Sequence record: MG752970.1
Strand: one strand, 5' to 3'
Length of the DNA: 64,000 nt
The position numbers were made by a program, and so were the translations under genes. Shown piece after piece: positions 1,779-28,702 of this stretch (the first letter of the stretch is position 1; each line of letters begins with the position of its first letter). The notes beneath the pieces are model-generated. The model was not told the origin of the DNA. It searched no databases and saw only the letters and a program-made list of their open reading frames with translations.

Positions 1779-1782
1779 CAAC

Positions 1783-2616: not shown

Positions 2617-3180
2617 ATGACGTCCCAGGAACAATACGCAGAAGTGGTGCAGTGGATAGGGTTGAACGTTCGTAGATATGGTCAAAGGAACGTTCACGAT
2701 TCTTTGGTTGACCGGTATGGAAGATACCATATCGTAAAAGACGGAGTGGATTTCACAGGTACTGGTCTGCCGTTCAGTAAACCAAGTTTCCTAGAGATCA
2801 ACTCTAAGCATTTAACGTTTGAGAACTATGACTTTGAGAATTCACAGTACGGTGGAGTAGGTCAGATCAGTACTGCCTTCATGACTTTAGAATTCTGCAA
2901 AGGTGATCTGGAGAAGGTGGTTAGACAGACCGCTCCGATGAGAATCGATTTCTTGAACATTAGTGCTAAGTTTGGAGAATTTACTAATTTGGTTGCTGCT
3001 ACACAGGTGTCTGATCACGTGATCTTCAGAGTATCAAGACCTAATAGCAGTAGTTCCATATTAGAGATATCGACTATTACGAACGTGGCGATATTTAAAG
3101 GTAAGCAATCCTGCTACTTCACTGACGTATTTGATTTACAGAACATTTTAATAGATAACGGGTTTGAGGATTTGGTATGA
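2617..3180 (+). CDS. paralog family member P1 (no MKLxEI N-terminus)
   Basis: C-term DVFDLQNILIDNGFEDLV; core GLPFSKP..YDFENSQYG shared with P2-P5. Confidence 0.9.
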   Translation: MTSQEQYAEVVQWIGLNVRRYGQRNVHDSLVDRYGRYHIVKDGVDFTGTGLPFSKPSFLEINSKHLTFENYDFENSQYGGVGQISTAFMTLEFCKGDLEKVVRQTAPMRIDFLNISAKFGEFTNLVAATQVSDHVIFRVSRPNSSSSILEISTITNVAIFKGKQSCYFTDVFDLQNILIDNGFEDLV

Positions 3181-3758
3181 GGTTGAATGAAATTAAAGAT
3201 CAGACAGGATTTAAGACTATATCAGATTGGGTTAAACTGAATGCTAGTGAATCTACTGTACACGATGTTCTGGCTAATATTAAAGAATTGCGTTCCGGTT
3301 CATACTGCATCCAGATGAATCACTTGTTCCTAAATGGTAACGGTCAACCGTTCAGTAAACCAGACAATCTCATTATCAGAGCTCTTGAACATATAACATT
3401 TAGCAATTATGATTTCGAGAATTCTGATTATGGGTTTACTGGAACAATTAACGCATATTCGGTATCTCTCGAGTACGGTCCTAAGTGTGATTTGGTAAAG
3501 GTGTTCCAGCGGACTTCAAGTTTATCGTTTGACAAGATTTATGTCACTCTTAAGATGGGTGAGTTTACGAATTTAGTTCCAGCAACCGAGATGGTAGAGA
3601 ATGCGGTAATTACTGCAGCAGGTGGAGAACCTCTTCGTAAACTCTTCATAAGTACAAGAGGACAATTCGTTAATACTGGTGGTAAGAAACATGATTATAA
3701 AGATGCGTTCGATCTACAAGAGATTTTAATTAATAACGGGTTTGAGGATTTGGTATGA
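3177..3758 (+). CDS. paralog family member P2
   Basis: MRLNEI...DAFDLQEILINNGFEDLV; ATGA overlap. Confidence 0.9.
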   Translation: MRLNEIKDQTGFKTISDWVKLNASESTVHDVLANIKELRSGSYCIQMNHLFLNGNGQPFSKPDNLIIRALEHITFSNYDFENSDYGFTGTINAYSVSLEYGPKCDLVKVFQRTSSLSFDKIYVTLKMGEFTNLVPATEMVENAVITAAGGEPLRKLFISTRGQFVNTGGKKHDYKDAFDLQEILINNGFEDLV

Positions 3759-4348
3759 GGCTATCAGAAATAAAAGATAAGGACGCTGATCAGGCAATAG
3801 TTGATTGGGTCAGATCAAACCTCGATTACTATAATGCAAGTGCCATAGTTGATTCGATACCTAGAACGGGTGAGACGTTTAACCTGGCACTAGTTGATGT
3901 AATGCTTGATGGTAAAGGTCGACCTTTCAGCAAACCCGACAATCTTAAGATTACCGCTGATAGTATTACTCTTCTAGACTTTGATTTTGAGAATTCTGAT
4001 TATGGTAATGTTGGAGATATCAGTATCGATTACTTAATTCTAACATATGGAGTTCTGAAGCAAGGTCCTAAGTTTGATCTAGTAAAGGCGATTGAGAAGA
4101 CTCACAATGTGTCGCTGGATACCATTACGATAAATGTTAAACCTGGTGAGTTTAGTAATCTCATAGCCGCAACTGAGATATCAGATAGACTTAATATTAA
4201 TATCCGGCGCATTAAACCTGCCGGTCAGACGGTGAGTATTGATACAAGTAATTGGGTACTCTCTATAGGAAGTAAGAAATTTGATTACAAGGATCCTTTC
4301 GAACTGCAGGAGCTTTTGATTGACAACGGGTTTGAGGAATACGTATGA
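3755..4348 (+). CDS. paralog family member P3
   Basis: MRLSEI...DPFELQELLIDNGFEEYV; ATGA overlap. Confidence 0.9.
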   Translation: MRLSEIKDKDADQAIVDWVRSNLDYYNASAIVDSIPRTGETFNLALVDVMLDGKGRPFSKPDNLKITADSITLLDFDFENSDYGNVGDISIDYLILTYGVLKQGPKFDLVKAIEKTHNVSLDTITINVKPGEFSNLIAATEISDRLNINIRRIKPAGQTVSIDTSNWVLSIGSKKFDYKDPFELQELLIDNGFEEYV

Positions 4349-4929
4349 AGCTATCAGAAATTAAAGAAACTAATAATCCGATGTTTGCATGGATTACTAA
4401 GAACGTCAAAAGTCTGAAAATGCAGAACTTGATGCTGGACTATATTCAAGATATCAAACCCGAGGATCAACTTAAACAAGTAAGCATTCAGAATCTGACA
4501 CTAACCGGTAATGGTGAACCGTTCGAACCACCCCCATTTGACTTACACGTTGCGAATGAACTCATACTTAATAACTATGATTTCGAGAATTCTGATTATG
4601 GTAAACCGGGTACTATACAGGGCGCTCACATCATTTTAGAATATGGTCCTAAGTGCGATTTGGTAAAGGTGGTGCAGAAGATCGTGAACATGCAGTGCGT
4701 TACATTGGGAGTCATAGTTGAATCCGATGGATTTACGAATTTGATTCCTGCAACAGATATATCCTGGAGATTAAATCTATCAATCGTCGATTGGGCAACA
4801 CAGAAAAAGATAATTGAAATTCGTACTGAATCTAAAAAGATATTCATCAACGGTGAGCAGTTAGAATATTCGGATGTCTTTGATCTTCAGGACATTTTGA
4901 TTCAGAATGGATTTAAGGAGTATGTATGA
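4345..4929 (+). CDS. paralog family member P4
   Basis: MKLSEI...DVFDLQDILIQNGFKEYV. Confidence 0.9.
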   Translation: MKLSEIKETNNPMFAWITKNVKSLKMQNLMLDYIQDIKPEDQLKQVSIQNLTLTGNGEPFEPPPFDLHVANELILNNYDFENSDYGKPGTIQGAHIILEYGPKCDLVKVVQKIVNMQCVTLGVIVESDGFTNLIPATDISWRLNLSIVDWATQKKIIEIRTESKKIFINGEQLEYSDVFDLQDILIQNGFKEYV

Positions 4930-5483
4930 GGCTGAGTGAAATTCAAAGAGACGGTATTAAAGAATGGCTGAATAAGTATTTAGCCGACAATCGTATTGAT
5001 GATGTAACATCCATCGTGAAATCTATTGATGCAAATAATGGATTGTATATCAATCAATTGCTATTAGGAAGTAAAGGCAGTACTTTCGTTTCTCCTCCTT
5101 TTCAGATTCATGCAGACTATACTAAACTGTCTGATTACGATTTCGAGAATTCTACATATGCAAATATATCAACAAAAGATCTTGCTCTGGTAGGACGAAT
5201 GAATGATATAGAGAAGGTGGTAACCGGTGTAAAGAAATCTTTTAAAAGATTGGCTGACCTTCAGATTACTGCATTTTCTAATAATGCACGTAATGTAGTT
5301 TCTGCTATATCAATGGTTGACAAATTTGATATGTATGTGCAGATCATGGCTAATGATTATACTCTTTCCATTAACACATTTGATCAATCAATATATACTG
5401 ACGTAACGAATAGACAAACGTACGAAGATGTATTTGATCTACAGGACATTTTAATTAACATGGGATTTGAGGCACTGGTATGA
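4926..5483 (+). CDS. paralog family member P5
   Basis: MRLSEI...DVFDLQDILINMGFEALV. Confidence 0.9.
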   Translation: MRLSEIQRDGIKEWLNKYLADNRIDDVTSIVKSIDANNGLYINQLLLGSKGSTFVSPPFQIHADYTKLSDYDFENSTYANISTKDLALVGRMNDIEKVVTGVKKSFKRLADLQITAFSNNARNVVSAISMVDKFDMYVQIMANDYTLSINTFDQSIYTDVTNRQTYEDVFDLQDILINMGFEALV

Positions 5484-6064
5484 AGCTAACTGAAGTTTTA
5501 AGATTAACGAAGAGAGATGTTATTGATACCATGCAGGAGTATGGTATTAGTTTGGTAGGTAACAGGGCGGTTAGTGAAAGTGTTTTTGAGATCGATGCGT
5601 ATGATCAGGTCATCATGAATCCATCAGAGGCTGCGCTAGAGTTTAGGAAGAGCATTGCTAAACCTATTCCACTCGTATTTGCATATGCATCAAACATGAT
5701 ATTTAGAACCATTAAAGTAGCAGATTGGAGTTATCTAGGATCTCCTAATCAATCTTTAGACTGGTTCTTCGCAAATTGCTTGCTACCAGACTTCAATGAT
5801 ATGCCTAACTTTCCTAGTGTCGCGCTAGAAATTGTTGATGCACGATACCTCCAGCAACCTATTTCGGGTCTGTTTGATAATTCTCCAGTAGCGTCTTTAA
5901 GCTACATCCCTGACGATCGAAACAAGCACGTTAGTATCAGCAAGGGCGTTCATCAGAATAGTAACGACATTCTTATTATATGGAAGGGTGGAAGTAAGAC
6001 CGTATCGAGCACGTTTGAGCTACAGGACTGGTGCATCGATAATGGGTTTGAATTCTGGGCGTAA
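5480..6064 (+). CDS. paralog family member P6
   Basis: MKLTEV...STFELQDWCIDNGFEFWA. Confidence 0.9.
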   Translation: MKLTEVLRLTKRDVIDTMQEYGISLVGNRAVSESVFEIDAYDQVIMNPSEAALEFRKSIAKPIPLVFAYASNMIFRTIKVADWSYLGSPNQSLDWFFANCLLPDFNDMPNFPSVALEIVDARYLQQPISGLFDNSPVASLSYIPDDRNKHVSISKGVHQNSNDILIIWKGGSKTVSSTFELQDWCIDNGFEFWA

Positions 6065-6067
6065 TGC

Positions 6068-6640
6068 TTATACCAGGTTATCAAACCCATTTGTAATCAG
6101 CCAATCCTGAAGTTCGAATGTATCATCTAGAAAAGTTGTCTTTTGTTGGTATCTAACTTTAATCTTTCCAGGTGTGGATGAGGCTGTCTTATCCTTCCAG
6201 ACGGAAAGGAATGAAGTAGGACCATCCTCTAGCAAAAACTCTGTACTCTCAGAATCATTATCAAACATAGGGATAATGCTGTCCTTGAATCCTACATCTG
6301 GACTCATTGAGATCTGTATGTGTTTAAAAACCGGTATCTGAGCTATAGGCGGAATTTCGCAATTAATAAAGTACCATTCTTTTGCTTGAGTTGGTGATCC
6401 TACATCTGACCAGTTGCTAATGATTCTTCCGTTGATCTCTATAGAAAACAATCCATCAAATTCAAAAGGAAGTTTAATTGGCCCGGCTCCATACACTGAA
6501 GCGCTAACATGCAATGATTTAAAGACCACCTTATTGTTGACCACATCAAACGCGACTGGCATTCCAAACTCGATTGAGTTTTTGTCAATAAAGTCTTCAA
6601 CCTGTTTCTTTGTGAGTCCCTGTATCTCTTTAAGCTTCAT
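6068..6640 (-). CDS. paralog family member P7 (inverted)
   Basis: MKLKEI...DTFELQDWLITNGFDNLV; AGAAAGGAG RBS and TAAATA upstream on minus strand. Confidence 0.9.
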   Translation of the reverse strand: MKLKEIQGLTKKQVEDFIDKNSIEFGMPVAFDVVNNKVVFKSLHVSASVYGAGPIKLPFEFDGLFSIEINGRIISNWSDVGSPTQAKEWYFINCEIPPIAQIPVFKHIQISMSPDVGFKDSIIPMFDNDSESTEFLLEDGPTSFLSVWKDKTASSTPGKIKVRYQQKTTFLDDTFELQDWLITNGFDNLV

Positions 6641-6658
6641 TAGAATTCTCCTTTCTTA

Positions 6659-6696
6659 TATTTACGGGTTTCTACGGATAGCTTATAATGTAAATA
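6659..6696. promoter_or_regulatory. divergent pair of TAAATA boxes
   Basis: TATTTA 6659-6664 (serves P7) and TAAATA 6691-6696 (serves P8-P19). Confidence 0.6.
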
Positions 6697-6712
6697 GAAG
6701 AAAGGAATGAAC

Positions 6713-7309
6713 ATGAAGCTAAACGAAATATCTCCACTAGATGATGCTATATCCTGGGTTAATAAGCACATAGGTGCAAAAGCTCGGGTCGCCCGATCAA
6801 TGATTCAACAGCTGCGATCACTTTATATGAATTCAGAACCAGATAAAGTGATCGCAACGGACCACTTAAACCTGCAAGCTAAACAATTTCCCGATGGTTG
6901 GGTAAGTCCACCATTTAAGATTTCTGCCGAACAAGTCCATTTATATGGGTTTGACACCAAGGACTCGAGGTTTGACTGGATTCAGAGCTGCGATAGTCTA
7001 GTTATTCATGACTATGAAGAAGGTGAGGTTTCAGATATTCGTGTCGATGAAATAGCTAACATTCAGGGATTGAGTGGTTTCTCTGTTCTGGCTGATATTA
7101 ATCATTGTAAGAGAATCGTAAACATTTTCGATCTTATAGGTTCAGTGACGGTGCAGCTAAGAGTTAGTAAGAATAGAACCGATGATACCGATTTTGCCAT
7201 CTGGATCTACAACAACGATGCTAACATTCAGGGCAAGCGCGTTAACTTCAATTCCATCTTTGATCTACAAGAGATTCTGATTGATAATGGATTCGAGGAT
7301 CTAGTATGA
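6713..7309 (+). CDS. paralog family member P8
   Basis: MKLNEI (ATG 6713, AAAGGA RBS)...SIFDLQEILIDNGFEDLV. Confidence 0.9.
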   Translation: MKLNEISPLDDAISWVNKHIGAKARVARSMIQQLRSLYMNSEPDKVIATDHLNLQAKQFPDGWVSPPFKISAEQVHLYGFDTKDSRFDWIQSCDSLVIHDYEEGEVSDIRVDEIANIQGLSGFSVLADINHCKRIVNIFDLIGSVTVQLRVSKNRTDDTDFAIWIYNNDANIQGKRVNFNSIFDLQEILIDNGFEDLV

Positions 7310-7908
7310 AGCTAAACGAAATTGCAATGAGCGATGGTGAGATGATTGACTATCTCATTAAGAATCTCAAGTTTAAGGACGATTGGTACGACACGGAATG
7401 GAATGATGCGTCAGAGGTTTCAACCACACTAACTGTTAATAAGTATGGTGTCGATGTGGATGCAGCATACTGGCTAGAACCTAAGAGAGTAGTTGATATT
7501 GCATTTCCGATTGTAAACATGATTGGATGGACTGGTAAATGGAACATCATGAAGCAGTGCAAGGTTAATATGCCAGATGTATCGTCAGTGTATGTAACTG
7601 AGTTTAATGGTACTCCGGCTGATATCACCGCTTACTTTTCTCAGTTTCAGAAACTAGATGATGCCCGAGTCGTGATAAAGAAAGGAGTAAAAGGTGCGAT
7701 TAATCTGTTCAATGCTTTAACAGAATTGAATTCAAAAGATCCGATGTTTTACGTTACTCTTGAAAATGAAAAGGTGTCTATCAGTAAGAATAGAAACTCC
7801 GCCATCATAACTATATTTGATCTCGCAGAATATAAGACGTATCATGTAGATAGCATCTTTGATCTGCAAGACTGGCTGATAGATCATAATATGAAGGATC
7901 TAGTATGA
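7306..7908 (+). CDS. paralog family member P9
   Basis: MKLNEI...SIFDLQDWLIDHNMKDLV; core resembles P23. Confidence 0.9.
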   Translation: MKLNEIAMSDGEMIDYLIKNLKFKDDWYDTEWNDASEVSTTLTVNKYGVDVDAAYWLEPKRVVDIAFPIVNMIGWTGKWNIMKQCKVNMPDVSSVYVTEFNGTPADITAYFSQFQKLDDARVVIKKGVKGAINLFNALTELNSKDPMFYVTLENEKVSISKNRNSAIITIFDLAEYKTYHVDSIFDLQDWLIDHNMKDLV

Positions 7909-8483
7909 AGCTAAACGAAATAACAGACATCTACAATTGGGCAAGAACGTATAGTAAAAACGGAAGCACGAATTTGCACCTTGAGAATGGCAAAGTGTTG
8001 TTTATGGCCATGTACTTGAATGCTCCTACCTACGATAATACATTCGTACCTCCACCTATTGAGTGTCAGGTTGAAACTAACTGCAGAATTTTATTCTTTG
8101 ATGTTAGCACCATCACGTTAGACTGGCTTGATAGCTATCAAAATCTTACCATAGATGGCGATGGTGATTTCACCAACTTACTACCAGAAATTCGTAAGAG
8201 CGTTCAAAAGGTAAATCCAAATACGATAGTGATTAACACCCTTTTAACCAGCACCTTAAACATTCCAGAATTATGTAGCTTGCCGTGCAATGTTAGCGTG
8301 GCCATTTTCAGGAAAGTTGTCAATTCATCGTATGAAAATTCAGAATTCATCCTGTATACGAATAAAGGAAGCATTGAAATTATAGAAGATGTTGGTACAA
8401 GCAATGCCCGGGTTATAAAAAACTTAGATCAGTTTACTCTACAGGATTGGCTGATTGATAACGGTTACGAGAACTTCATATGA
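7905..8483 (+). CDS. paralog family member P10
   Basis: MKLNEI...DQFTLQDWLIDNGYENFI. Confidence 0.9.
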   Translation: MKLNEITDIYNWARTYSKNGSTNLHLENGKVLFMAMYLNAPTYDNTFVPPPIECQVETNCRILFFDVSTITLDWLDSYQNLTIDGDGDFTNLLPEIRKSVQKVNPNTIVINTLLTSTLNIPELCSLPCNVSVAIFRKVVNSSYENSEFILYTNKGSIEIIEDVGTSNARVIKNLDQFTLQDWLIDNGYENFI

Positions 8484-9049
8484 AACTTCGAGAGATAAAA
8501 GGATCAGTGGATCCAAGTTGGTTGAAATGGGCTAAAGCTAATACACAAAAAGCTAGATCAAATCTATTAGACATTATTGAGTACGAGGATGGAAGACCAT
8601 TCCTACATGTTGAGAACATGACGTTGAGAGGCAACAATCAGGCGTTCACTCCACCTCCCTTTCAAATCATAGTAGAAGAAACATTAGAGCTTAACAACTA
8701 TGATTTTGAGAATTCAGTGTATGGAAACATTAAAGCTAAGACTGTAGAAATGAATGGTGTAGAAGGCGATATGCTTAAGGCTGTAAAAGCCATTGAGACG
8801 ATTAAGCCTGAATACGTACTTATCTACAGTAAGCGCGGAACATTTAGCAACTTATTAGCCGCCGTCGATGGACAGAATATTGCTCAGTTAGAAATTGTTA
8901 TTACGCATGCAACACCACCATTAACACCAATTGCTTCTATATCAACGTGGGACAAAATGGTTTTGATAGGCAACAGCTACAAGGCATATTCTGACATCTT
9001 TGAGCTGCAACAGTTACTAGTGGATAATGGTCTTGAGGATATTGCATGA
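8480..9049 (+). CDS. paralog family member P11
   Basis: MKLREI...NYDFENSVYG...DIFELQQLLVDNGLEDIA. Confidence 0.9.
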   Translation: MKLREIKGSVDPSWLKWAKANTQKARSNLLDIIEYEDGRPFLHVENMTLRGNNQAFTPPPFQIIVEETLELNNYDFENSVYGNIKAKTVEMNGVEGDMLKAVKAIETIKPEYVLIYSKRGTFSNLLAAVDGQNIAQLEIVITHATPPLTPIASISTWDKMVLIGNSYKAYSDIFELQQLLVDNGLEDIA

Positions 9050-9684
9050 AGCTAAACGAGATTAAAGACAATAGTGAAATCGCAAACTGGATTAATAGGT
9101 TTGCGGGTGAAGAATCTCATACACTTGGCGCCAGCTTCTTAGATCGTGATGAGCTACTGAAGAAGATATCTCTTGACAGTGATGGTAAATATGTGCTACC
9201 GACCACGGTTAAAAACATTAAAGTAAGATGGTCCGGGAAATTTGAGGCGCCCCCGTTCATTCTGAACGGGGTGAATTGGTTGATCTTTTCTTCAAATGAT
9301 TGTGATACGGTAGATCTAGGGTTTGTAAAGAACGCTTGGGTTCTATCATTCATCGGAAATCTAGGAAACTTAAATCATTACGTAGGTGAGCTGGGTAAAC
9401 TTGAGACACCATTAGGATCGTCTCATAGGGTAAACTTCAAAGCAAATAAACCGTGCTCAGGATTAATTGAGACTCTGCACAATCTTCAGCGCACAAGAGT
9501 TCATTTTGACTACATTCCAATTCATCCGGATCTAGACTTAAAGCAACTGGGCGGTAGGGGATTCAAGCTTCTATGCGAACATAACGTATACACCTTCGGT
9601 TTTGCCGGTGAAGCTGTTAAATATGATAACCTATTCGATGTTCAGGATCGATTAGTGAATGACGGATTTGCGGAGTTTATATGA
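9046..9684 (+). CDS. paralog family member P12
   Basis: MKLNEI...NLFDVQDRLVNDGFAEFI. Confidence 0.9.
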   Translation: MKLNEIKDNSEIANWINRFAGEESHTLGASFLDRDELLKKISLDSDGKYVLPTTVKNIKVRWSGKFEAPPFILNGVNWLIFSSNDCDTVDLGFVKNAWVLSFIGNLGNLNHYVGELGKLETPLGSSHRVNFKANKPCSGLIETLHNLQRTRVHFDYIPIHPDLDLKQLGGRGFKLLCEHNVYTFGFAGEAVKYDNLFDVQDRLVNDGFAEFI

Positions 9685-10286
9685 AGCTGAATGAAATTAA
9701 AAAGGATATTATTAGAGAGTGTTATGACTGGTTTGAGTCATACGTTATATTAGGAGGTCTTTCTAGAGTTTACGAAAACTTTAAGGAAGATTTCTATGAC
9801 AATTTCTTCATGGCACCGGATGGAGTCCCAGTACTAAGGTTTGATACTAAGCAGATCAACATTGAATATTCTGGAAAGGAGTGGACTCAGCCACCGTTTA
9901 GAATCAGAGCAGCCTCCATACGTATTGCTAATTTAGATTGTCGTAATATGGATTTAAGCTTCATCGATCCTATCATAGATGACATGCAATTTAGAATGCA
10001 TAATTGTGTTGTTGGTAATTGTCAAAAGTTTATTGATGCAGAAGCCAGCGTAGAACAATTTGATATCTCAACATCGGATATCAGCAACGTTGTAGAGATG
10101 CTGCGAGTTTGCGAGAATGTTAGAATCTATTTGAATCTTGGCAAATCGAAAGTACTTGTTATTGAGAGCGTTGAAAGAAGCAAATTTTCTCTTGTAGATA
10201 GTATCGATAAGAAGCAGTATGATTTCACTGATATTTTTGACGTTCAAACATGGCTCATAGAAAATGGGTATGAGGACATCGTATGA
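9681..10286 (+). CDS. paralog family member P13
   Basis: MKLNEI...DIFDVQTWLIENGYEDIV. Confidence 0.9.
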   Translation: MKLNEIKKDIIRECYDWFESYVILGGLSRVYENFKEDFYDNFFMAPDGVPVLRFDTKQINIEYSGKEWTQPPFRIRAASIRIANLDCRNMDLSFIDPIIDDMQFRMHNCVVGNCQKFIDAEASVEQFDISTSDISNVVEMLRVCENVRIYLNLGKSKVLVIESVERSKFSLVDSIDKKQYDFTDIFDVQTWLIENGYEDIV

Positions 10287-13895: not shown

Positions 13896-13897
13896 GA

Positions 13898-16133: not shown

Positions 16134-16193
16134 AAGTTTCCATTAGGATTGGGTTTGATTTAGAATTTATCAAGTCAAACCCAAGTGAATATC

Positions 16194-16427: not shown

Positions 16428-16447
16428 CCAATCGCAGTTCCAAAAAT

Positions 16448-16475
16448 AAAAGGATGCCACACGGCATCCTTTTTG
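16448..16475. terminator. intrinsic terminator (likely bidirectional)
   Basis: AAAAGGATGCC-ACAC-GGCATCCTTTTT. Confidence 0.75.
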
Positions 16476-16513
16476 CTATTTGTGGATCGATAAAGTTGAA
16501 AGAAGCCTTTCTG

Positions 16514-16519
16514 TAAATA
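16514..16519 (+). promoter_or_regulatory. TAAATA late-promoter-like box
   Basis: 16 nt upstream of ATG 16536, followed by AGAAAGGAG RBS. Confidence 0.6.
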
Positions 16520-16535
16520 AAGAAAGGAGATCGTT

Positions 16536-17743: not shown

Positions 17744-17761
17744 GTGTGCTTTAGAAAGATT

Positions 17762-19056: not shown

Positions 19057-19106
19057 AGCTAGAAGCAATTTACCAGGCATTCCCATTCTCGGAGTTCCCA
19101 ATATGA
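19053..19106 (+). pseudogene. 17-codon mini-ORF / collapsed paralog cassette
   Basis: MKLEAIYQAFPFSEFPI*, ATGA overlap with P26 stop and with P27 start. Confidence 0.5.
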
Positions 19107-20900: not shown

Positions 20901-20943
20901 GGTCCCCAGAGATGATAGACCCGTGTGATGAAGTACCCAGCAT

Positions 20944-20949
20944 TAAATA
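20944..20949 (+). promoter_or_regulatory. TAAATA late-promoter-like box
   Basis: in the intergenic gap 40 nt upstream of P30. Confidence 0.5.
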
Positions 20950-20989
20950 ATCAAAAATACATCTGAGCACTTCTAGGTGCTTTCTAGCT

Positions 20990-21595: not shown

Positions 21596-21609
21596 TTCCG
21601 GACAAAATT

Positions 21610-21634
21610 AAAGGGAGCAAAAAGCTCCCTTTTT
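21610..21634. terminator. bidirectional intrinsic terminator
   Basis: AAAGGGAGC-AAAAA-GCTCCCTTTTT between convergent genes. Confidence 0.75.
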
Positions 21635-21649
21635 ATTTCGCAAAATTGA

Positions 21650-21817
21650 TCAGGCAAATTCGAGATACGTCTGATATGCCCATTCCGTCTCCATGCTCTC
21701 GTATCTTTCATCACTCACCACTCGATCCAGGGGAAGGCCGCGAAGATATGCCCAAACTTCAAATTCGATTTTGCTTGGTTTTTCCTTACGAGGAATTTCA
21801 AAGATAATGGTTGCCAT
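21650..21817 (-). CDS. small hypothetical early protein
   Basis: MATIIFEIPRK..., GGAGG RBS, own sigma70 promoter. Confidence 0.7.
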   Translation of the reverse strand: MATIIFEIPRKEKPSKIEFEVWAYLRGLPLDRVVSDERYESMETEWAYQTYLEFA

Positions 21818-21842
21818 GTCAACCTCCAATTTCGATATTGTT

Positions 21843-21871
21843 ATTCTAACATGAAATCGGGAAAAGTACAA
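21843..21871 (-). promoter_or_regulatory. sigma70-type promoter
   Basis: minus strand TTGTAC-17 nt-TAGAAT. Confidence 0.7.
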
Positions 21872-22144
21872 TTACCTTTCTATTTTCTTAGCTTTTTGAT
21901 ATTCTTTTAGGCGGCGTTTGAGCTCAAATTTAACTGTTCTAGCCATTTCTCCATGCCAACCACCAGCATTGATCAGAAATCTGGAAACGATATCGTCAAC
22001 ATCATCGAGAAAATACTTGTCACCAATATTTCTGACATGAAGCAATGCCATGAGATATTCTCCAGCATGTGGATCAACCCGCTTCCAATCCAGTACCACC
22101 AAAGCTGCCAGTTCCTGGATAGAATACTTAGTAAGATCGATCAT
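21872..22144 (-). CDS. small hypothetical early protein
   Basis: MIDLTKYSIQEL..., GGAG RBS; start refined from 22201, which lies in a promoter. Confidence 0.7.
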   Translation of the reverse strand: MIDLTKYSIQELAALVVLDWKRVDPHAGEYLMALLHVRNIGDKYFLDDVDDIVSRFLINAGGWHGEMARTVKFELKRRLKEYQKAKKIER

Positions 22145-22171
22145 TTCGCGTCTCCAGATGGTCTTAGGTTT

Positions 22172-22201
22172 ATTATAAACTAATAACCTGGAAAAGTACA
22201 A
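22172..22201 (-). promoter_or_regulatory. sigma70-type promoter
   Basis: minus strand TTGTAC-18 nt-TATAAT; spacer starts TTTTCC as in the 21843 and 105 promoters. Confidence 0.7.
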
Positions 22202-22217
22202 TATTTACGCATACATG

Positions 22218-22223
22218 TAAATA
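22218..22223 (+). promoter_or_regulatory. TAAATA late-promoter-like box
   Basis: 23 nt upstream of P31 ATG 22247. Confidence 0.55.
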
Positions 22224-22246
22224 TGACATCGATAGGGAATATTCAC

Positions 22247-22879
22247 ATGAAGTTACGAGAAATTACTGAAAGGTCCATGCCCAATGAATGGAGGGATTGG
22301 TTATTACAAACTAATCAAAAATGGATGATGGGTTATGAAGGATCCCAGCAAGAGTGGATCCGAGACTATATGACTGGGGATACGTTCAACCTTGAATCGT
22401 TTGGAGGATTGACAATCTACGGACCAGCGAAATCTGATGAAAATTGGAATGACATGACGCGGCTTGAATTTGTACCACCCCCATTTAAACTTGGTAATCT
22501 CAGCAGCTTAACGGTTTTCAACCGCGATTTCTCAAATACGGGCATGTCATGGCTACCTGGAAAGTGTGAGAAACTGGAATTCGATAGATGCAAATTTCCT
22601 AAAGGATTTTTATCCACAGATTTAAATAAGGTGGGAGATCTGGAGCGTTTAGTTATTTCCGATTGCATTTTTCAAGATGGAGCGGCAGACATATTTGATC
22701 AAAACTATTCAGTGCAGCTCCATAATTATAGAGGATCATCTTCAAATCATCTCATCATCAATGGTCAGAATGGTGTAGGACGCGTCCTAATTAAGTTAGA
22801 GAGCCAACCATTCAACTTCAAGGACATTTTCGAACTTCAAGAATACTTGATGGATCACAGATTTCCGGATTTAGCATGA
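22247..22879 (+). CDS. paralog family member P31
   Basis: MKLREI...KLGNLSSLTVFNRDF..LPGKCEKLEFDRCKF..LERLVISDC (LRR-like)...DIFELQEYLMDHRFPDLA. Confidence 0.9.
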   Translation: MKLREITERSMPNEWRDWLLQTNQKWMMGYEGSQQEWIRDYMTGDTFNLESFGGLTIYGPAKSDENWNDMTRLEFVPPPFKLGNLSSLTVFNRDFSNTGMSWLPGKCEKLEFDRCKFPKGFLSTDLNKVGDLERLVISDCIFQDGAADIFDQNYSVQLHNYRGSSSNHLIINGQNGVGRVLIKLESQPFNFKDIFELQEYLMDHRFPDLA

Positions 22880-23457
22880 AACTACAAGAAATTACAAACA
22901 ACAATTCACCCGTTGGTGCCTGGATGGCCGCATGTGCTGATCGGGGATACACCACAACCATTGATAATAGACATCGCTTAGAAAATGGTGTCTTGCATAT
23001 TGACGGCAATTTACAAATTCGAAGTCATGGAAATCTTCCATTTCCACAAATGCCATTCAAACTTGGTGATGTAAAAATTCTGTTACTAAGAAATTTAGAT
23101 TTGACAGATAGTGATTTCAGTTGGCAACCCCAAAGCTGTGATCTTATAACTTTTGATTACTGTAAACTTCCAGAAATTAAGAACGAGTTATTTGGAAATG
23201 TTGGTGAGCTTGGAATTGATTCTCTCGAATCAGATATTCCTAGAATTTCCCATGATATGTACACAGAAGAATTTCCATTTATATATCGGCTGTACAAGCG
23301 CGTTGATGCCGGGATCCCAGAATTTTCTCTTACGGTTGAAGGAAGTTGGATACAGGTAACAGATGGAAATAATGAAATTAAATTTGATGATCTGTTTACT
23401 TTTCAAGATTATCTAACAAATCACCCAAACGAAAAATTGCAATCTTTAATGATATGA
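22876..23457 (+). CDS. paralog family member P32
   Basis: MKLQEI...DLFTFQDYLTNHPNEKL; core similar to P31. Confidence 0.9.
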   Translation: MKLQEITNNNSPVGAWMAACADRGYTTTIDNRHRLENGVLHIDGNLQIRSHGNLPFPQMPFKLGDVKILLLRNLDLTDSDFSWQPQSCDLITFDYCKLPEIKNELFGNVGELGIDSLESDIPRISHDMYTEEFPFIYRLYKRVDAGIPEFSLTVEGSWIQVTDGNNEIKFDDLFTFQDYLTNHPNEKLQSLMI

Positions 23458-24056
23458 AACTACAAGAAATAGCTGAAAAATCCACAGGTGAAATAATTGC
23501 TGACTGGATAGCATCCATGGAAGAACATGGCATCCATGTCGCACTTGGCAACGGCCCAAAATTTAATAGTGATGGAAACTTAGATGTTAATTATGTTTCA
23601 TTATCTGCTAGAAACAATCCGGTTTTATTAGATTCTTATTTTCCATTCAAACTCAATGTTGGGGTTATAGTAATTGACGGGTTGGATCTTACACAAACAA
23701 AATTTGAATTCATGAGTGAATATACGGATTCTGAAACCGTAAAACTGATACATTGCAAATGGCCACAAGAAATCACCGGTGACTGGCTATCCGTTCTGCT
23801 GCCCGCTGATGTAGAAATACATACATCAATGAACAACATTCCCAATCTTAAACATGACGTATGGGATGGAACCTTAATTTTCAGCATTAATCTGTATCAA
23901 GGTCATCATAAAATTTACACATTGGAATATACAGATGACGATGAGTTTATTTTTAGAGATTATGCAACTACCCGAAAAGTCTTCAACGACATATTCGATT
24001 TACAAGAATTCCTAGTATCATACAATGATGAGCGTTTACTACCATTAGTATCATGA
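23454..24056 (+). CDS. paralog family member P33
   Basis: MKLQEI...DIFDLQEFLVSYNDERL. Confidence 0.9.
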   Translation: MKLQEIAEKSTGEIIADWIASMEEHGIHVALGNGPKFNSDGNLDVNYVSLSARNNPVLLDSYFPFKLNVGVIVIDGLDLTQTKFEFMSEYTDSETVKLIHCKWPQEITGDWLSVLLPADVEIHTSMNNIPNLKHDVWDGTLIFSINLYQGHHKIYTLEYTDDDEFIFRDYATTRKVFNDIFDLQEFLVSYNDERLLPLVS

Positions 24057-25225
24057 ACTTTAAATCTTTCTTAAACATCAACAAGCTTTTTGAGGCCTAT
24101 GATTATCATGCAGACGACGATGCAGATAATGCCGATAAGTGGCTTGCGAAATGGACATATGAAGGCATTGACAAATACCCTAGCAATGAAATTCTAGACG
24201 AACTTAAAGAAAAATATCCATTTGATGGAGGCGTTGTTTATCGGGGATTAAATTTCCATGACAAGGAACAATACGACAAGTTCATGGACAGCACAAATGG
24301 TGGAACGATCCTACATACTGGATCAATTACAAGTTGGACCGAAAATGAGAAAACAACTTATCCATTTGCGGTTACGCGACCCACTTACTTTTTAAATCGA
24401 GAATTAATGCAGGCAGAAGATAAGAAAAATCGTGAACGTGATTTCATGATTGGACACGCAGGCTTAGTACTAGAAACTATTGTCAAACCTGGAAAAGGAA
24501 TTGACGTCAATAAATCCAAGTATGGAAAAGAAAGTGAAATTATTCTGGTGCCAGGTACTTACGAAATTAAAATTCACAAGCAGTATATTCCTTTCGTAAG
24601 ATCAATCAATGATGAGAACTTTAAGAAAAAGTTCATGTCAATTAATACGATAAGTGACAGAGAAGATGATCATCAGGCAAAAATGTTTGAACACATCATG
24701 TTCCATTACAAGGAATTTGATGATGAAATGAAACATCATTTGTTTGGATTGCTAATCAAGAACGTCACGAAGATCCACTATGGAGTTGAAGTTACTGAAG
24801 CAGCTGATTGGAATGGTAGCAAGTGGCCACAGATTGAAGTGTATTGGAATGTTCCACCAACATTCTTCATTTACTACAGCATGCTTCTTCCTGAGGATGC
24901 CAAAATAATCGACGATCAGCTTGATAAGATAATTGAATCTATCGAGCGCGATTTTGATGAGAAAACCAAGGGTATTGATTTCACTCACAAGTTTGAACTC
25001 GATATCAACAACTCAATTGCACTGGCAGTTAAGATGGAGCATCTAGAAAACAAACTTACTTTTATGAAGAAGATGCGACAGAACGTTGGCAAGAGATATA
25101 ACGAACTCAACTCGTATGAGGCTGTCAAGAAGATTAATGCCATCAAGGATCCCCAAAAACAACTTGATGCAATCAGAAAATTAGCAAAGGATCTTGAACA
25201 AGCTCTTAATCAAGGTAAATTCTAG
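24053..25225 (+). CDS. putative ADP-ribosyltransferase (R-S-E clade) with helical C-terminus
   Basis: VYRG...SITSWT...ESEIIL motifs in order; ATGA overlap with P33; N-term MNFKSFL..LFE. Confidence 0.6.
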   Translation: MNFKSFLNINKLFEAYDYHADDDADNADKWLAKWTYEGIDKYPSNEILDELKEKYPFDGGVVYRGLNFHDKEQYDKFMDSTNGGTILHTGSITSWTENEKTTYPFAVTRPTYFLNRELMQAEDKKNRERDFMIGHAGLVLETIVKPGKGIDVNKSKYGKESEIILVPGTYEIKIHKQYIPFVRSINDENFKKKFMSINTISDREDDHQAKMFEHIMFHYKEFDDEMKHHLFGLLIKNVTKIHYGVEVTEAADWNGSKWPQIEVYWNVPPTFFIYYSMLLPEDAKIIDDQLDKIIESIERDFDEKTKGIDFTHKFELDINNSIALAVKMEHLENKLTFMKKMRQNVGKRYNELNSYEAVKKINAIKDPQKQLDAIRKLAKDLEQALNQGKF

Positions 25226-25227
25226 AC

Positions 25228-25265
25228 GTGAAATAAAAGGCAGCCTAGGCTGCCTTTTATTTCAC
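25228..25265. terminator. perfect 38-bp palindrome, bidirectional terminator
   Basis: GTGAAATAAAAGGCAGCCTAGGCTGCCTTTTATTTCAC between convergent genes. Confidence 0.8.
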
Positions 25266-25276
25266 CTGAGTTTCTT

Positions 25277-25651
25277 TTACACTCGATACGCCGTGATGAA
25301 CTCAAGTAGAGGATCGAGTTCTGTCTTATCGATTCCCTTTTCGAGGAGCGTCTTCTTGGCATCGTTCTGATCGCCAACGCACAGCTCGTAAAGCTCTTCG
25401 TCAGTCAGAGAGTTCAACATTGCTTCCGATTTCGTAAGACGCTCAGACCCAAATTTTTCAAGAATCGAATCACCCAACTTCCAGTAATAATCCACATACG
25501 CCTTTTCAGCGGATGCTCCCAGTCCCGGGCTTTCACCGATTCTGCTGAAAGCCCCAACAGATTGTGCAATCCGAATAGAGCAATCAAGGATTTTTGGAAA
25601 TGCAGCTTGCGCGCGCAATTCCGTAATGGTGGTGATTTGATTATGAGACAT
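25277..25651 (-). CDS. hypothetical early protein
   Basis: MSHNQITT..., AAGGAG RBS; start refined from 25693. Confidence 0.7.
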   Translation of the reverse strand: MSHNQITTITELRAQAAFPKILDCSIRIAQSVGAFSRIGESPGLGASAEKAYVDYYWKLGDSILEKFGSERLTKSEAMLNSLTDEELYELCVGDQNDAKKTLLEKGIDKTELDPLLEFITAYRV

Positions 25652-25681
25652 GATTATCTCCTTCGGGTCATATGTGATTTC

Positions 25682-25710
25682 ATTATAGCACATGACCCAA
25701 AGTTTGTAAA
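25682..25710 (-). promoter_or_regulatory. sigma70-type promoter, extended -10
   Basis: minus strand TTTACA-17 nt-TATAAT with TG at -14. Confidence 0.7.
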
Positions 25711-25721
25711 CTGCCTTTTAT

Positions 25722-25997
25722 TCACATACTTTCTTGATATTTCTTCAAAAACTCCAGGGTTTTTTCAAGAGACGCAATTTCTTCTGTGACTGCACGCAGT
25801 CTATCATCCACTACTTCTTTGGGTGGTGTCGTCCATTCCCAGTCGTATCCTCTATAGTGATCCGACCAGTTATTCCTGTCCATGTCTTCCGCTACAATAT
25901 CACCAATGTCAGAGTCGGATGCATCCCAACAAACATAGGCATATTCCCAGCTACTGACGTGACTTGACCAATGAGACCTATATCGATACCACTTCAT
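25722..25997 (-). CDS. hypothetical protein (Trp/Tyr-rich N-term, coiled C-term)
   Basis: 91-aa ORF, ATGA overlap with upstream ORF. Confidence 0.7.
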   Translation of the reverse strand: MKWYRYRSHWSSHVSSWEYAYVCWDASDSDIGDIVAEDMDRNNWSDHYRGYDWEWTTPPKEVVDDRLRAVTEEIASLEKTLEFLKKYQESM

Positions 25998-26314
25998 AAT
26001 TCCTCCAAAAGATCAAGTTCGTAGTCATAGAAAAATACTGGAGAAGAGGATCCATCCCGAAGAACCCAAATTCTTTCAACGGGTTCCACGAATTCTACAG
26101 TACCTCTAGATCCTTTACTAAATCCTGATTTGTTATTCACCAGGACTCGGTCTCCTCGCTTGAGATTAGTTTTTAGAGCCTTCTTTGGTCGCAGCACTTC
26201 GTAATCTGCAACATATTCGGTATAATACTCGGCGTACGAAGAAATCTTTTTAGGTTTGGGTTTAGCAAACAGTTTACTAAACATATCCAATAGAACGTTC
26301 ATGACAATCTCCAT
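25994..26314 (-). CDS. hypothetical protein with KOW/SH3-like motif
   Basis: LKRGDRVLVNNKSGFSKGSRGTVEFV. Confidence 0.6.
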   Translation of the reverse strand: MEIVMNVLLDMFSKLFAKPKPKKISSYAEYYTEYVADYEVLRPKKALKTNLKRGDRVLVNNKSGFSKGSRGTVEFVEPVERIWVLRDGSSSPVFFYDYELDLLEEL

Positions 26315-26365
26315 GAGAATTCCTTTTTATTTTATCATCTAATATTCCAAAGATAGAACAAATAA

Positions 26366-26385
26366 AAGGGCTCCTAGGAGCCCTT
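26366..26385. terminator. palindromic terminator
   Basis: AAGGGCTCCTAGGAGCCCTT, identical core to 28709-28730. Confidence 0.7.
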
Positions 26386-26404
26386 AGATTGAATCAGGTG
26401 GGAT

Positions 26405-26707
26405 TCAGTCGAGATTAATTTTCTCAAATCCCATTGGCTTCACCAGATAGAACTTGGTGTCCACCTTGATAATGTCTCCTACTGCCATCGACCGGAGTTT
26501 CGGGTTATCTTGATATCGCTGGAATGCCGCATCACACGCAACCAAGGGGTCAGAAGCACCATGATCAAACGAAGCAGCACGAGTGTAGAAATCGGTGTCC
26601 CAAGCAGATCGAACAGCTTCGGCATCCGCATTCATGATGATCTTGAAATGACTTTCGTAAACTTGGGCTCCTGCGTTCCAGTCATACTGATAGTAAGTAA
26701 CCTTCAT
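26405..26707 (-). CDS. YodL-like domain protein (tentative)
   Basis: RSMAVGDIIKVDTKFYLVKPMGFEKI resembles the YodL-like pattern; GGAG RBS before MKVTYY. Confidence 0.5.
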   Translation of the reverse strand: MKVTYYQYDWNAGAQVYESHFKIIMNADAEAVRSAWDTDFYTRAASFDHGASDPLVACDAAFQRYQDNPKLRSMAVGDIIKVDTKFYLVKPMGFEKINLD

Positions 26708-26738
26708 GATTTCTCCGGGGTGGTGAAGATTCAATATC

Positions 26739-26767
26739 ATTATAACACAGTTCGGACGAACATCCAA
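26739..26767 (-). promoter_or_regulatory. sigma70-type promoter, extended -10
   Basis: minus strand TTGGAT-17 nt-TATAAT with TG. Confidence 0.6.
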
Positions 26768-26802
26768 ACATGGTTACAATTTTAATAGATGCGCGTTGGA
26801 AA

Positions 26803-26808
26803 TAAATA
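26803..26808 (+). promoter_or_regulatory. TAAATA late-promoter-like box
   Basis: ATAAATA 20 nt upstream of P34. Confidence 0.6.
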
Positions 26809-26828
26809 CTGCATCGATAAGGAATCTT

Positions 26829-27419
26829 ATGAAACTTTCAGAAATTTACGATTACGGCGACTTCGAGGAATGGATGTATCAAGGAAATATTTTAGATCCA
26901 TGGACCGGAAAGAAAATTACAGCCGAAAATGCGGAAGAAGATATAGCCGATCAGCTTGCGCATAACAATGACGGATCAGTAAGTATAATGTGTTATACCG
27001 GAGACTGCAACTTTGTGTTTAATGTTGGTCATGTGTTAACTCCTCCAGTACCGATAGATTATGTAGATGTAATAGGATATGGTTATGGAACATATAAAAA
27101 CATTGGAACGTGTTGGCCAAAAGAAACTCCAACTCAGATAGAATTCCATAACATACCTGATATACAGGTAGACGATTTAGTCAATCGTTTAAAGGATGTT
27201 GCAGACTTAAGAATAAAATTTAGTGGATGCAAATTTATTGGATCATTGGCAAATTTCATGGAACTTCATATAACCGATCCAGACAATTTCTTCCTTGTAG
27301 GAGACACACCAAATATTGACAAGCTAATAGAGTTGTTTCATAGAGGATTTGATGAGCGTATGAATGCTTTCGAATTCCAAGATCTTCTAATCGAAAACGG
27401 ATTTGATGATCTTGTGTAA
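26829..27419 (+). CDS. paralog family member P34 (solo)
   Basis: MKLSEI (start refined)...NAFEFQDLLIENGFDDLV. Confidence 0.9.
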   Translation: MKLSEIYDYGDFEEWMYQGNILDPWTGKKITAENAEEDIADQLAHNNDGSVSIMCYTGDCNFVFNVGHVLTPPVPIDYVDVIGYGYGTYKNIGTCWPKETPTQIEFHNIPDIQVDDLVNRLKDVADLRIKFSGCKFIGSLANFMELHITDPDNFFLVGDTPNIDKLIELFHRGFDERMNAFEFQDLLIENGFDDLV

Positions 27420-27731: not shown

Positions 27732-27889
27732 CAGTGCTTGCGTATGTGTCAAATTTGGAACACGAAAACAGGCAAATGCGAGACCTATTGATTGAGGTTG
27801 CTCTTGATATTCGGTCTGGTCAATTTGCACCAAACGACATCTCAAAGAAAATACTTGACGAGCTTCTAAAAATTAGAGGCGAAAAATAA
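27728..27889 (+). CDS. small hypothetical protein
   Basis: MTVLAYVSNLEHEN..., ATGA overlap. Confidence 0.55.
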   Translation: MTVLAYVSNLEHENRQMRDLLIEVALDIRSGQFAPNDISKKILDELLKIRGEK

Positions 27890-27903
27890 GTGCTAGCAAA
27901 TCA

Positions 27904-27909
27904 TAAATA
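27904..27909 (+). promoter_or_regulatory. TAAATA late-promoter-like box
   Basis: ATAAATA 22 nt upstream of P35. Confidence 0.6.
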
Positions 27910-27931
27910 ATCCATAACGTGGGATTACATT

Positions 27932-28702
27932 ATGAAGCTATATGAGATAAGCAAAGCACCCAATAAAGCAGCAGTTGTAGAATGGCTACAATCCTGTAGA
28001 CCCGATGATATTGTACGATCTAAAGCCGATCCACATAATCCCAGATGGAAAATAGATCCTGACAAAATCAAATACAACCCTATCACTGGTATAGTAGATG
28101 TTAAGGAAAATCTAGCACTCAGTTTTTCTCATGGTGGCCAAACTGCACCAGAACAATTGCCAATTTACGGCAAGCGTGACTATTCAAAATTAAAGACCCA
28201 TAGCTGGGAAGAGCTTGAATATGAACCGGGGTGGAATGAAGTTACTCACCAGGTTGAAATTCAAACATCGGCTCCTTGGACCGCAGATTGGAAACACGGA
28301 GAGTTTGATCCTCCTTTTATTTTTGGGCATATGGATGGTCAGCTTCATATCTCTGGAGCGGACAAATTTAACTATCCAAAATTACCCAAAACCATAAAGG
28401 ATGGAACAAGTGGATTGGTGTTCTATGAATGTAAAAATGTAGACCCAGTTGCCGCGATAGAGAGATGCAACACTGATTTTTTCATTATAGTGGAATCGAC
28501 TATTGTTCCAGGAAAATTGACAGATTTTCTATCGTATGTTAAAAGACCAGCGGGAAGATGCGGCATCGAGAGAGTTTTAAATTTCTCTAGCGAACAGAAC
28601 AATGTTCTTGAGAAATCACTGGAAGCTTTTAGGAATGGTGAAATCGATGAGTTCGATTTCCAAGATCGGCTAACAAATGTAGGTCTTGCTGAATATCTTT
28701 AA
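27932..28702 (+). CDS. paralog family member P35 (longer, solo)
   Basis: MKLYEI...PPFIFGHMDG...DEFDFQDRLTNVGLAEYL. Confidence 0.85.
   Translation: MKLYEISKAPNKAAVVEWLQSCRPDDIVRSKADPHNPRWKIDPDKIKYNPITGIVDVKENLALSFSHGGQTAPEQLPIYGKRDYSKLKTHSWEELEYEPGWNEVTHQVEIQTSAPWTADWKHGEFDPPFIFGHMDGQLHISGADKFNYPKLPKTIKDGTSGLVFYECKNVDPVAAIERCNTDFFIIVESTIVPGKLTDFLSYVKRPAGRCGIERVLNFSSEQNNVLEKSLEAFRNGEIDEFDFQDRLTNVGLAEYL

Follow-up and report, generated by a model that had tools for sequence, protein, structure and literature searches.

Why would a phage carry dozens of small, similar genes side by side? The question is raised by a 64,000-nucleotide stretch of DNA (the window) from Ralstonia phage RsoM2USA, spanning record positions 186001-250000, with record position 186001 as window position 1. 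Between window positions 2617 and 28702 lie 35 open reading frames (ORFs), P1-P35, whose products resemble each other at both ends. RsoM2USA is a soil myovirus with a 343,806-bp genome (MG752970.1, to which window positions 2617-14000 are 100% identical), and every gene is annotated there as encoding a hypothetical protein. The published description of the phage (PMC8504454) does not contain the words paralog, gene family or duplication. An initial annotation, made from the sequence alone, had described the 35 ORFs as hypervariable paralogs with constant N- and C-terminal tags and proposed that they encode virion-packaged, injected proteins. Here we find that they belong to a larger protein family with one common fold, which evolves fast and turns over genes, and whose members may be loaded into the virion as small binders of host proteins.

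All 35 ORFs listed in the initial annotation are present and intact (Table 1). Their products are 185-217 amino acids (aa) long, apart from the 256 aa of P35. At 24 of the 30 same-strand junctions, neighboring genes share a 4-nt ATGA overlap, which points to translational coupling of the array genes; these overlaps are preserved. Exactly 31 members begin with M[KR][LM]x[ED][IV], as had been counted before, the exceptions starting at 2617, 14485(-), 15069(-) and 15683/15695(-). At the other end, F-x-[LFVM]-Q occurs within the last 24 residues of every member; the strict C-terminal consensus proposed initially fits only eight, so the conserved form is a loose one. M1, F179 and Q182 are invariant columns of the alignment. 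A degenerate DNA pattern of the C-terminal tag (C-tag) had five matches in the window against 0.00 expected, and a family profile (self-inclusive) matched each of the 35 ORFs over its full length at 1e-20 to 1e-52, which excludes chance. The conserved positions are encoded by a free mixture of synonymous codons (five to six for leucine, for example), indicating that conservation acts at the protein level. All members are acidic (isoelectric point (pI) 4.2-6.0, net charge -3 to -22), and the 35 translations look soluble, with no visible signal peptide or membrane segment.

The middles of the proteins had been judged impossible to align by eye, and in pairwise comparison this holds. BLASTP of the middles only linked 66 of 595 pairs at E<=1e-3, in components of 23, 8, 2, 1 and 1, and paralog identity in the alignment of all 35 is 15-37%. 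The middles are nevertheless homologous, since the profile covers every member from end to end and a structure model shows one collinear fold common to all. The model, an AlphaFold2 prediction of P4 with only the 35 paralogs as alignment, is one confident domain (predicted local distance difference test (pLDDT) 92.6, pTM 0.86). It runs from a disordered extreme N-terminus (residues 1-3) through three helices, five strands with two helices and a short beta-meander to a C-terminal helix. The C-tag corresponds to this helix (residues 178-187), which is well packed within the fold (pLDDT 97-98) and is more than a loose tag. Each member is thus predicted to consist of an M-K-L-x-E-I leader, a small helical cap, a beta/alpha solenoid resembling leucine-rich repeats (LRRs) and the helix F-x-L-Q-D-W-L-I-x-N-G-F-E.

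The initial annotation had recognized no named family. We searched all 35 members against Pfam, PHROGs and NCBIfam and with a PDB sequence profile, and found no significant named match. The best PDB sequence-profile match, Internalin H, was not significant (E=0.015), and a further profile match, to the N-terminal domain of a Salmonella effector, was likewise weak and below significance. Foldseek against PDB gave no match at E<=0.001 (best E 0.09) and weakly matched Toll-like receptor 4 (TLR4) ectodomains (TMq 0.31-0.37, E about 1). Against BFVD, the only significant Foldseek matches were 32 unnamed proteins (TM 0.44-0.86), which share one accession series and are probably the phage's own paralogs.

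The center of the window members, hereafter clade A, looks LRR-like in the model and by comparison with longer relatives. The first five strands of the P4 model recur every 21-26 residues. Two LRR proteins, P0084 and P0086 (DUF285/LRR_5/LRR_4), match profile positions 65-138 in seven and four stretches, respectively. Six longer proteins of RsoM2USA (ORFs 61, 82, 88, 89, 90 and 240; 214-288 aa), here called clade B, have plainly visible LRR-type repeats with a related C-terminus and a related leader, and the whole of clade A can be aligned with clade B (hhalign 99.1%, E=7e-19). Metagenomic clade-B relatives P0109 and P0113 exceed the Pfam LRR_4 gathering score (31 and 29.5 bits vs 27), and RsoM2USA's own ORFs 61/88/89/90/240 fall below it.

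The family is not confined to the region first outlined. Scanning the rest of the record, in separate pieces that were not joined, brought the total to 48 full-length copies: the 35 in the window, 12 directly upstream of it (ORF265 and ORFs 274-284; all lie on the minus strand and continue a little way beyond the C-tag) and ORF185 elsewhere in the genome. ORF267 is a truncated copy. Just upstream of the window, at record positions 183205-185708, is a run of seven or eight C-tag-only mini-ORFs of 75-80 aa (ORF285, ORFs 288-293), which consist of the last strands and the C-terminal helix (F-D-L-Q-D-W-[IV]). Their presence suggests that the C-terminal module may be able to function on its own. 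Altogether, the C-terminal motif occurs in at least 58 of 486 ORFs, so that roughly 35 kb, or about 10% of the 344-kb genome, belongs to one uncatalogued family, mentioned neither in the annotation nor in the paper.

Outside RsoM2USA, the family was found in uncultivated phages. When 1.84 billion representative proteins were searched with the profile, 97 matched at E<=0.001, 26 of them RsoM2USA's own; among the matches listed, another 26 were orthologs from close relatives (45-99% best-match identity) and the remainder were distant. The closer orthologs include P0009 and P0018, at 83-88% identity, and the metagenomic relatives come from ENA assemblies ERZ23872309, ERZ23579032 and ERZ23327992 and from Logan SRR10763725. 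All foreign members that we looked up came from metagenome assemblies and were nameless. A tblastn search of 50,697 phage records with four members (clade A, clade B, ORF88 and a metagenomic clade-B protein) matched only RsoM2USA, XacN1 not having been scanned at the profile level. At least 15 IMG/VR contigs, among them contigs of 342,591, 359,550 and 360,227 bp, carry clade B, in many cases as tandem genes. The presence of clade B in uncultivated phages of 340-360 kb indicates that the feature is not a one-off. The C-terminal helix is kept in lineage-specific versions across distant phage contigs, and within a given phage lineage the two termini seem to change together.

The 360,227-bp contig, JGI Ga0116227_10000010, looks like an unrelated huge phage. 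It has at least 23 tandem clade-B paralogs with lineage-specific versions of both termini, at positions 1-13643 and 18237-19471, beside NAD kinase and Thg1-like genes. DNA searches with the clade-A C-tag pattern were rejected as a source of further members. The single match in IMG/VR lay inside an unrelated enzyme gene, and all 52 metagenome (JGI) loci and all 36 genome (GTDB) loci were without family ORFs, so these are chance matches.

How the copies diverged could be followed in three metagenomic contigs (L004, L005 and L010) that are syntenic with window positions 9000-27400. Positional family orthologs are 46-75% identical between RsoM2USA and the metagenomic relative, whereas their non-family neighbors are mostly 77-94% identical (median 89%; one 91-aa ORF only 44-46%). 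Relatives do not carry an invariant set, as copies have been inserted, lost or moved: five copies in the relative are only about 30% identical to any window copy, the window copies starting at 17762 and 20990 are missing there, and the copy starting at 12670 has moved within the array. Median nonsynonymous divergence (dN) is 0.244 in the family against 0.069 in the neighbors, so that amino acids change about 3.5 times faster, and the ratio to synonymous divergence (dN/dS) is 0.10-0.27 with saturated synonymous sites. Most copies retain one-to-one positional orthologs despite this saturation. The family is therefore maintained by overall purifying selection and is fast-evolving, with gene turnover. 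Gene-wide positive selection was considered and dropped: with dS saturated and dN/dS <0.3, there is no evidence for it.

These data also show that the family is not hypervariable in the strict sense, as the initial annotation had called it. Divergence is old and spread over the full protein length, and the only DNA repeat within positions 2400-28900 is a 65-96-nt gene junction (C-tag, ATGA, N-terminal tag) in 23 copies at 60-81% identity. No recent duplication, conversion tract or template/variable pair was seen at the DNA level in these positions. The junctions could serve as recombination points for the gain, loss or movement of whole genes, which agrees with the turnover in relatives. Junction repeats span window positions 3129-22892, and stretches of up to about 27 nt are identical between them, as in 7295-7323 vs 7894-7922.

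Variation is not evenly spread over the fold. Across 34 ortholog pairs, strands are the least conserved elements (0.55), compared to 0.65 for helices and 0.88 for the C-terminal helix, and the variable positions alternate along strands (52/54, 95/97). This is the pattern of a variable sheet surface.

Promoter-like elements bear on when the arrays may be expressed. Seven of the eight family blocks are preceded by the sequence [A/G]TAAATA at a distance of 16-50 nt, and the arrays are flanked by strong terminator hairpins. In the genome as a whole, ATAAATA shows a 12.6-fold enrichment in non-coding DNA and has 41 oriented sites 15-60 nt upstream of ORFs, compared to a median of two for 126 composition-matched control words. 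GTAAATA alone is not over-represented in the whole window (15 vs 10.5 expected), so the weight rests only on its position and on the genome-wide statistics of ATAAATA. The T4 late-promoter consensus ends with the seven bases of this element, and its first T is poorly conserved in T4-like phages (PMC1524935). The element precedes the genes for the sheath (ORF359), wedge (ORF362), hub (ORF375), portal (ORF378) and neck (ORF401), as well as ORF361, ORF132, which was confirmed by mass spectrometry (MS), and the ORF90-89-88 operon. It stands before most structural operons, but not before replication genes. Since the arrays have the same promoter-like element as the structural genes, they are probably expressed late, with the virion genes, rather than early. 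A scan for sigma-70-like sites found them at chance frequency and was thus uninformative, and the published description of RsoM2USA reports no promoters and no phage sigma factor (PMC8504454). In total, [A/G]TAAATA has 63 oriented sites upstream of ORFs in the genome; other examples in the window are at 41797(-), 50710(-) and 54455(-).

Several observations are consistent with packaging into the phage head. L-x-E at residues 3-5 of the family leader corresponds, at the motif level, to the L/I-x-E site of T4-type prohead proteases. T4 gp21 cleaves after the Glu of this site, the first 10 residues of the internal protein IPIII are enough for head targeting, and T4-like phages load diverse proteins by such leaders (PMC9026906). 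The internal proteins of T-even phages are a diverse set of defense proteins in which only the targeting sequence is conserved (PMC3012670). RsoM2USA encodes a gp21-type protease, ORF379, which scores 85.4 bits against Peptidase_S77 (cut-off 27). The M[KR]..[LI]xE leader is found in 59% of 59 ORFs with the C-terminal motif vs 3% of 386 other ORFs, and in all 22 distant clade-B ORFs from IMG/VR. Finally, ORF89, a clade-B member (E=1.7e-20), was among the proteins assigned to virion gel bands with liquid chromatography coupled to tandem MS (PMC8504454).

Similar leaders (M-K-x..-[LI]-x-E) also occur on non-family ORFs, at window positions 29128-29907 (-) and 38282-39076 (-) and record positions 57328-57867, 165794-166216 and 166817-167473. 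Some of these ORFs have the late-promoter element, and two lie on either side of ORF257, whose product MS also identified in virions. They may encode further cargo on the same leader. The ORF at 29128-29907 (-) contains a long Gln/Pro-rich low-complexity stretch.

With the family, its common fold, its expansion and its turnover directly observed, we tentatively favor the possibility that RsoM2USA makes a late-expressed repertoire of small LRR-like binders, which are loaded into the virion through the N-terminal leader and act on host proteins after delivery. The arrays would be transcribed from T4-type late promoters along with the virion genes. As in T4 internal proteins, the leader would serve for capsid targeting and processing, a likeness suggested by the match of L-x-E to the site of gp21-type prohead proteases. 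Members would enter the prohead in low copy and reach the host together with the DNA, and each would bind a different host protein through its variable sheet surface. The family would then constitute a set of binders or inhibitors encoded in the germline, with host defense or takeover functions as the most plausible targets; an anti-defense role is purely inferred. As a structural cap, the C-terminal helix may also dock on a common partner.

The idea that the proteins are packaged and injected, already part of the initial annotation, thus gains from ORF89, the L/I-x-E leader and the gp21-type protease, and several points weigh against it or against other parts of the proposal. No clade-A member was among the approximately 10 abundant virion gel bands analyzed, and ORF89 was assigned to its band partly by molecular mass (PMC8504454). 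Their acidity sets the proteins apart from the T4 internal proteins, which have been described as basic (PMC9026906). L-x-E comprises only three residues, and in clade A it would give a leader of just five. Four of the 35 members have no leader, including the whole minus-strand trio at 13898-15695, which also has no promoter motif. The late timing is read from a motif. As to the fold, LRR membership is not established for clade A: LRR models matched none of the 35 members at E<=1, their Pfam search was empty and the Foldseek matches to TLR4 are weak.

A bolder version of the proposal, which we regard as doubtful, is that approximately 50 LRR-like binders are addressed to the prohead by a universal leader and delivered together with the DNA, so that every infection would begin with an inhibitor cocktail against many alternative host defense or takeover targets. 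For docking or ejection, all members would share the invariant C-terminal helix as a module, and the strategy would be common among uncultivated huge phages, as represented by clade B.

Alternatively, and in our view rather unlikely, the proteins could be late intracellular adaptors that are never packaged. The LRR-like body would bind host or phage proteins and the C-terminal helix would dock all of them on one partner, such as a protease, chaperone or assembly factor, in a logic resembling that of F-box/LRR or poxvirus ankyrin-PRANC proteins. That the C-terminal helix is the most conserved element, with F179 and Q182 invariant, fits this scheme, as do its lineage-specific versions in distant contigs and its occurrence alone on mini-ORFs and at the end of longer clade-B proteins, which suggests an autonomous module. 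Acidic, soluble proteins without a visible signal peptide or membrane segment would also be expected of adaptors. However, the scheme leaves the deeply conserved, flexible N-terminal leader without explanation and does not account for the report of ORF89 in virions. Late promoters fit virion cargo better than takeover functions, and Pfam, PHROGs and NCBIfam gave no match to F-box, PRANC or any other adaptor domain.

It is unlikely that the proteins are instead external host-recognition modules, namely small LRR-type adhesins held on fibers, baseplate or capsid by a constant terminus, a mixed set of which would give a broad host range across three Ralstonia species. The late-type promoter motif and ORF89 in virions fit this reading, the array lies directly beside the tail/baseplate module at 29-64 kb, and RsoM2USA has a wide reported host range (PMC8504454). 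There is also a parallel in phage Goslar, where a fiber-forming paralog family has LRR/beta-helix modules (bioRxiv 10.64898/2026.04.21.720040). Conversely, the RsoM2USA proteins are small, probably monomeric and acidic. Pfam revealed no fiber, trimerization or carbohydrate-binding domain, no receptor-binding protein in PDB or BFVD matched structurally, and approximately fifty different tips on one particle would be unprecedented.

A neutral or selfish expansion, in which duplicates without a specific role persist because junction repeats promote unequal recombination, is very improbable. The 23 junction repeats are a plausible substrate for copy gain and loss, and turnover between relatives is observed. 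Against this, none of the 35 ORFs is broken, the coupling overlaps persist, the paralogs are old, dN/dS is low and most copies have one-to-one positional orthologs at saturated synonymous sites. Targeted hypermutation, whether through variable genes of the diversity-generating-retroelement (DGR) type or recent gene-conversion cassettes, has a negligible chance of being correct, since all that recalls it is a superficial likeness, with constant ends and variable middles, the divergent junction-only repeats rule out a DGR or recent duplication, divergence is old and full-length, orthologs are stable between relatives, and no reverse transcriptase was matched by Pfam among the neighbors tested, the rest of the genome not having been searched for one.

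Virion-delivered binders would have their closest known counterparts in IPI, IPII and IPIII of T4. These are likewise diverse, fast-evolving small proteins with only a short L/I-x-E leader in common, and RsoM2USA likewise has a gp21-type (Peptidase_S77) protease and one superfamily member reported in virions. The two sets have no sequence or fold similarity in PDB, Pfam or PHROGs. The T4 proteins are basic and number about three, whereas the RsoM2USA family is acidic, has about 50 copies, and possesses one LRR-like fold and an invariant C-terminal helix that the T4 proteins lack; packaging and cleavage are only predicted here. Paralog families in the virions of jumbo phages are also known from chimalliviruses (the PF12699 inner-body proteins of phiKZ and Goslar and the DUF7941 fiber family). 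Some of these are cut by a gp21-like protease after Glu, and some have LRR/beta-helix modules (PMC9026906; bioRxiv 10.64898/2026.04.21.720040). Chimalliviruses are a different phage lineage, as RsoM2USA groups with XacN1 and is distant from Rak2-like phages. None of the 35 members matched PF12699 or DUF7941 in Pfam/PHROGs, and the RsoM2USA family is far larger and made up of small single-domain proteins.

Other likenesses concern the architecture. LRR binders such as internalins, Toll-like receptor ectodomains and lamprey variable lymphocyte receptors have the capped repeat solenoid with a variable sheet face that is suggested for the family, to which the strand period, the weak echoes of Internalin H and TLR4 and the clade-B relatives that pass LRR_4 can be compared. 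Unlike these proteins, clade A has no secretion signal and gives no match to any LRR model; its strands are long, a beta-meander plus helix forms its end, and its diversity comes from germline paralogy as opposed to somatic assembly. The ankyrin-PRANC proteins of poxviruses and the ankyrin, FNIP, LRR and F-box families of giant viruses are likewise large tandem families with a variable repeat domain, a constant terminal module, and lineage-specific expansion and turnover. They have no homology to the RsoM2USA family (Pfam empty), and the host here is a bacterium without a ubiquitin system.

If the members are indeed virion-delivered binders, the T4 principle of a constant leader and a variable payload would apply not just to about three proteins but to dozens on one scaffold, and a prohead-delivered repertoire would be the viral equivalent of a repertoire of innate-immune receptors. 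The family would also provide a defined, compact and naturally diversified binder scaffold and a concrete handle on the role of jumbo-phage orphan genes. The host is an important plant pathogen for which the phage is being considered in biocontrol, so gene functions bear on understanding host interactions.

Table 1. Family members, promoter-like elements, terminator-like hairpins and an associated gene, in window positions
Feature	Position	Strand	Remarks
P1	2617..3180	+	187 aa; without MKLxEI leader; subgroup 1
P2	3177..3758	+	193 aa; subgroup 1
P3	3755..4348	+	197 aa; subgroup 1
P4	4345..4929	+	194 aa; subgroup 1; AlphaFold2 model made from P4
P5	4926..5483	+	185 aa; subgroup 1
P6	5480..6064	+	194 aa; subgroup 2
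P7	6068..6640	-	190 aa; subgroup 2
P8	6713..7309	+	198 aa from MKL start; longest ORF from 6707; subgroup 3
P9	7306..7908	+	200 aa
P10	7905..8483	+	192 aa
P11	8480..9049	+	189 aa; subgroup 1
P12	9046..9684	+	212 aa
P13	9681..10286	+	201 aa
P14	10283..10900	+	205 aa
P15	10897..11505	+	202 aa, GTG start; subgroup 1
P16	11502..12083	+	193 aa
P17	12080..12673	+	197 aa; subgroup 1
P18	12670..13305	+	211 aa; ortholog at other array position in metagenomic relative
P19	13302..13895	+	197 aa; subgroup 3
P20	13898..14485	-	195 aa; without MKLxEI leader; subgroup 2
P21	14482..15069	-	195 aa; without leader; subgroup 2
P22	15066..15695	-	209 aa from TTG 15695, 205 aa from ATG 15683; without leader; subgroup 2
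P23	16536..17132	+	198 aa
P24	17129..17743	+	204 aa
P25	17762..18415	+	217 aa from MKL start; longest ORF from GTG 17744; ortholog absent in relative L004
P26	18412..19056	+	214 aa from MKL start; longest ORF from 18391; subgroup 3
P27	19103..19720	+	205 aa
P28	19717..20328	+	203 aa from MKL start; longest ORF from TTG 19684; subgroup 3
P29	20325..20900	+	191 aa; subgroup 2
P30	20990..21595	+	201 aa; subgroup 2; position empty in relative L004
P31	22247..22879	+	210 aa from MKL start; longest ORF from 22223
P32	22876..23457	+	193 aa; short extension beyond C-tag
P33	23454..24056	+	200 aa; short extension beyond C-tag
P34	26829..27419	+	196 aa from MKL start; longest ORF from TTG 26796
P35	27932..28702	+	256 aa; approximately 50-aa insertion in N-terminal half
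GTAAATA, late-promoter-like	2595..2601	+	16 nt before P1 start codon
GTAAATA, late-promoter-like	6659..6665	-	upstream of P7
GTAAATA, late-promoter-like	6690..6696	+	upstream of P8; heads 12-gene block
GTAAATA, late-promoter-like	16513..16519	+	upstream of P23; heads 8-gene block
GTAAATA, late-promoter-like	22217..22223	+	upstream of P31; block P31-P33 plus 390-aa ORF
ATAAATA, late-promoter-like	26802..26808	+	upstream of P34
ATAAATA, late-promoter-like	27903..27909	+	upstream of P35
Terminator-like hairpin	2442..2466	+	just upstream of first array
Bidirectional terminator-like hairpin	16448..16473	.	before P23 block
Bidirectional terminator-like hairpin	21610..21632	.	after P30
Bidirectional terminator-like hairpin	28709..28730	.	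after P35, end of family region
390-aa ORF, non-family associated gene	24053..25225	+	ATGA overlap with P33 (translationally coupled)

The 390-aa ORF coupled to P33 has 33 unnamed homologs and is 92.8% identical in the metagenomic relative. Residues 1-17 are disordered and contain an L-x-E. R64, S94, E160 and E162 are invariant among 31 sequences, and they are spaced similarly to the R-S-ExE triad of ADP-ribosyltransferases, to which the packaged T4 protein Alt belongs. Foldseek against PDB and a PDB profile returned nothing, and the only match was a weak one to DRAT; the putative assignment as an ADP-ribosyltransferase is therefore unconfirmed.

At the left end of the window, the record annotates RsoM2USA_295 on the minus strand (138-953), with a translation like low-complexity noise. 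An overlapping plus-strand ORF (198-893) reads like a real protein, and the stretch has a GC content of 49% vs 37-40% in the arrays. RsoM2USA_295 may thus have been annotated on the wrong strand.

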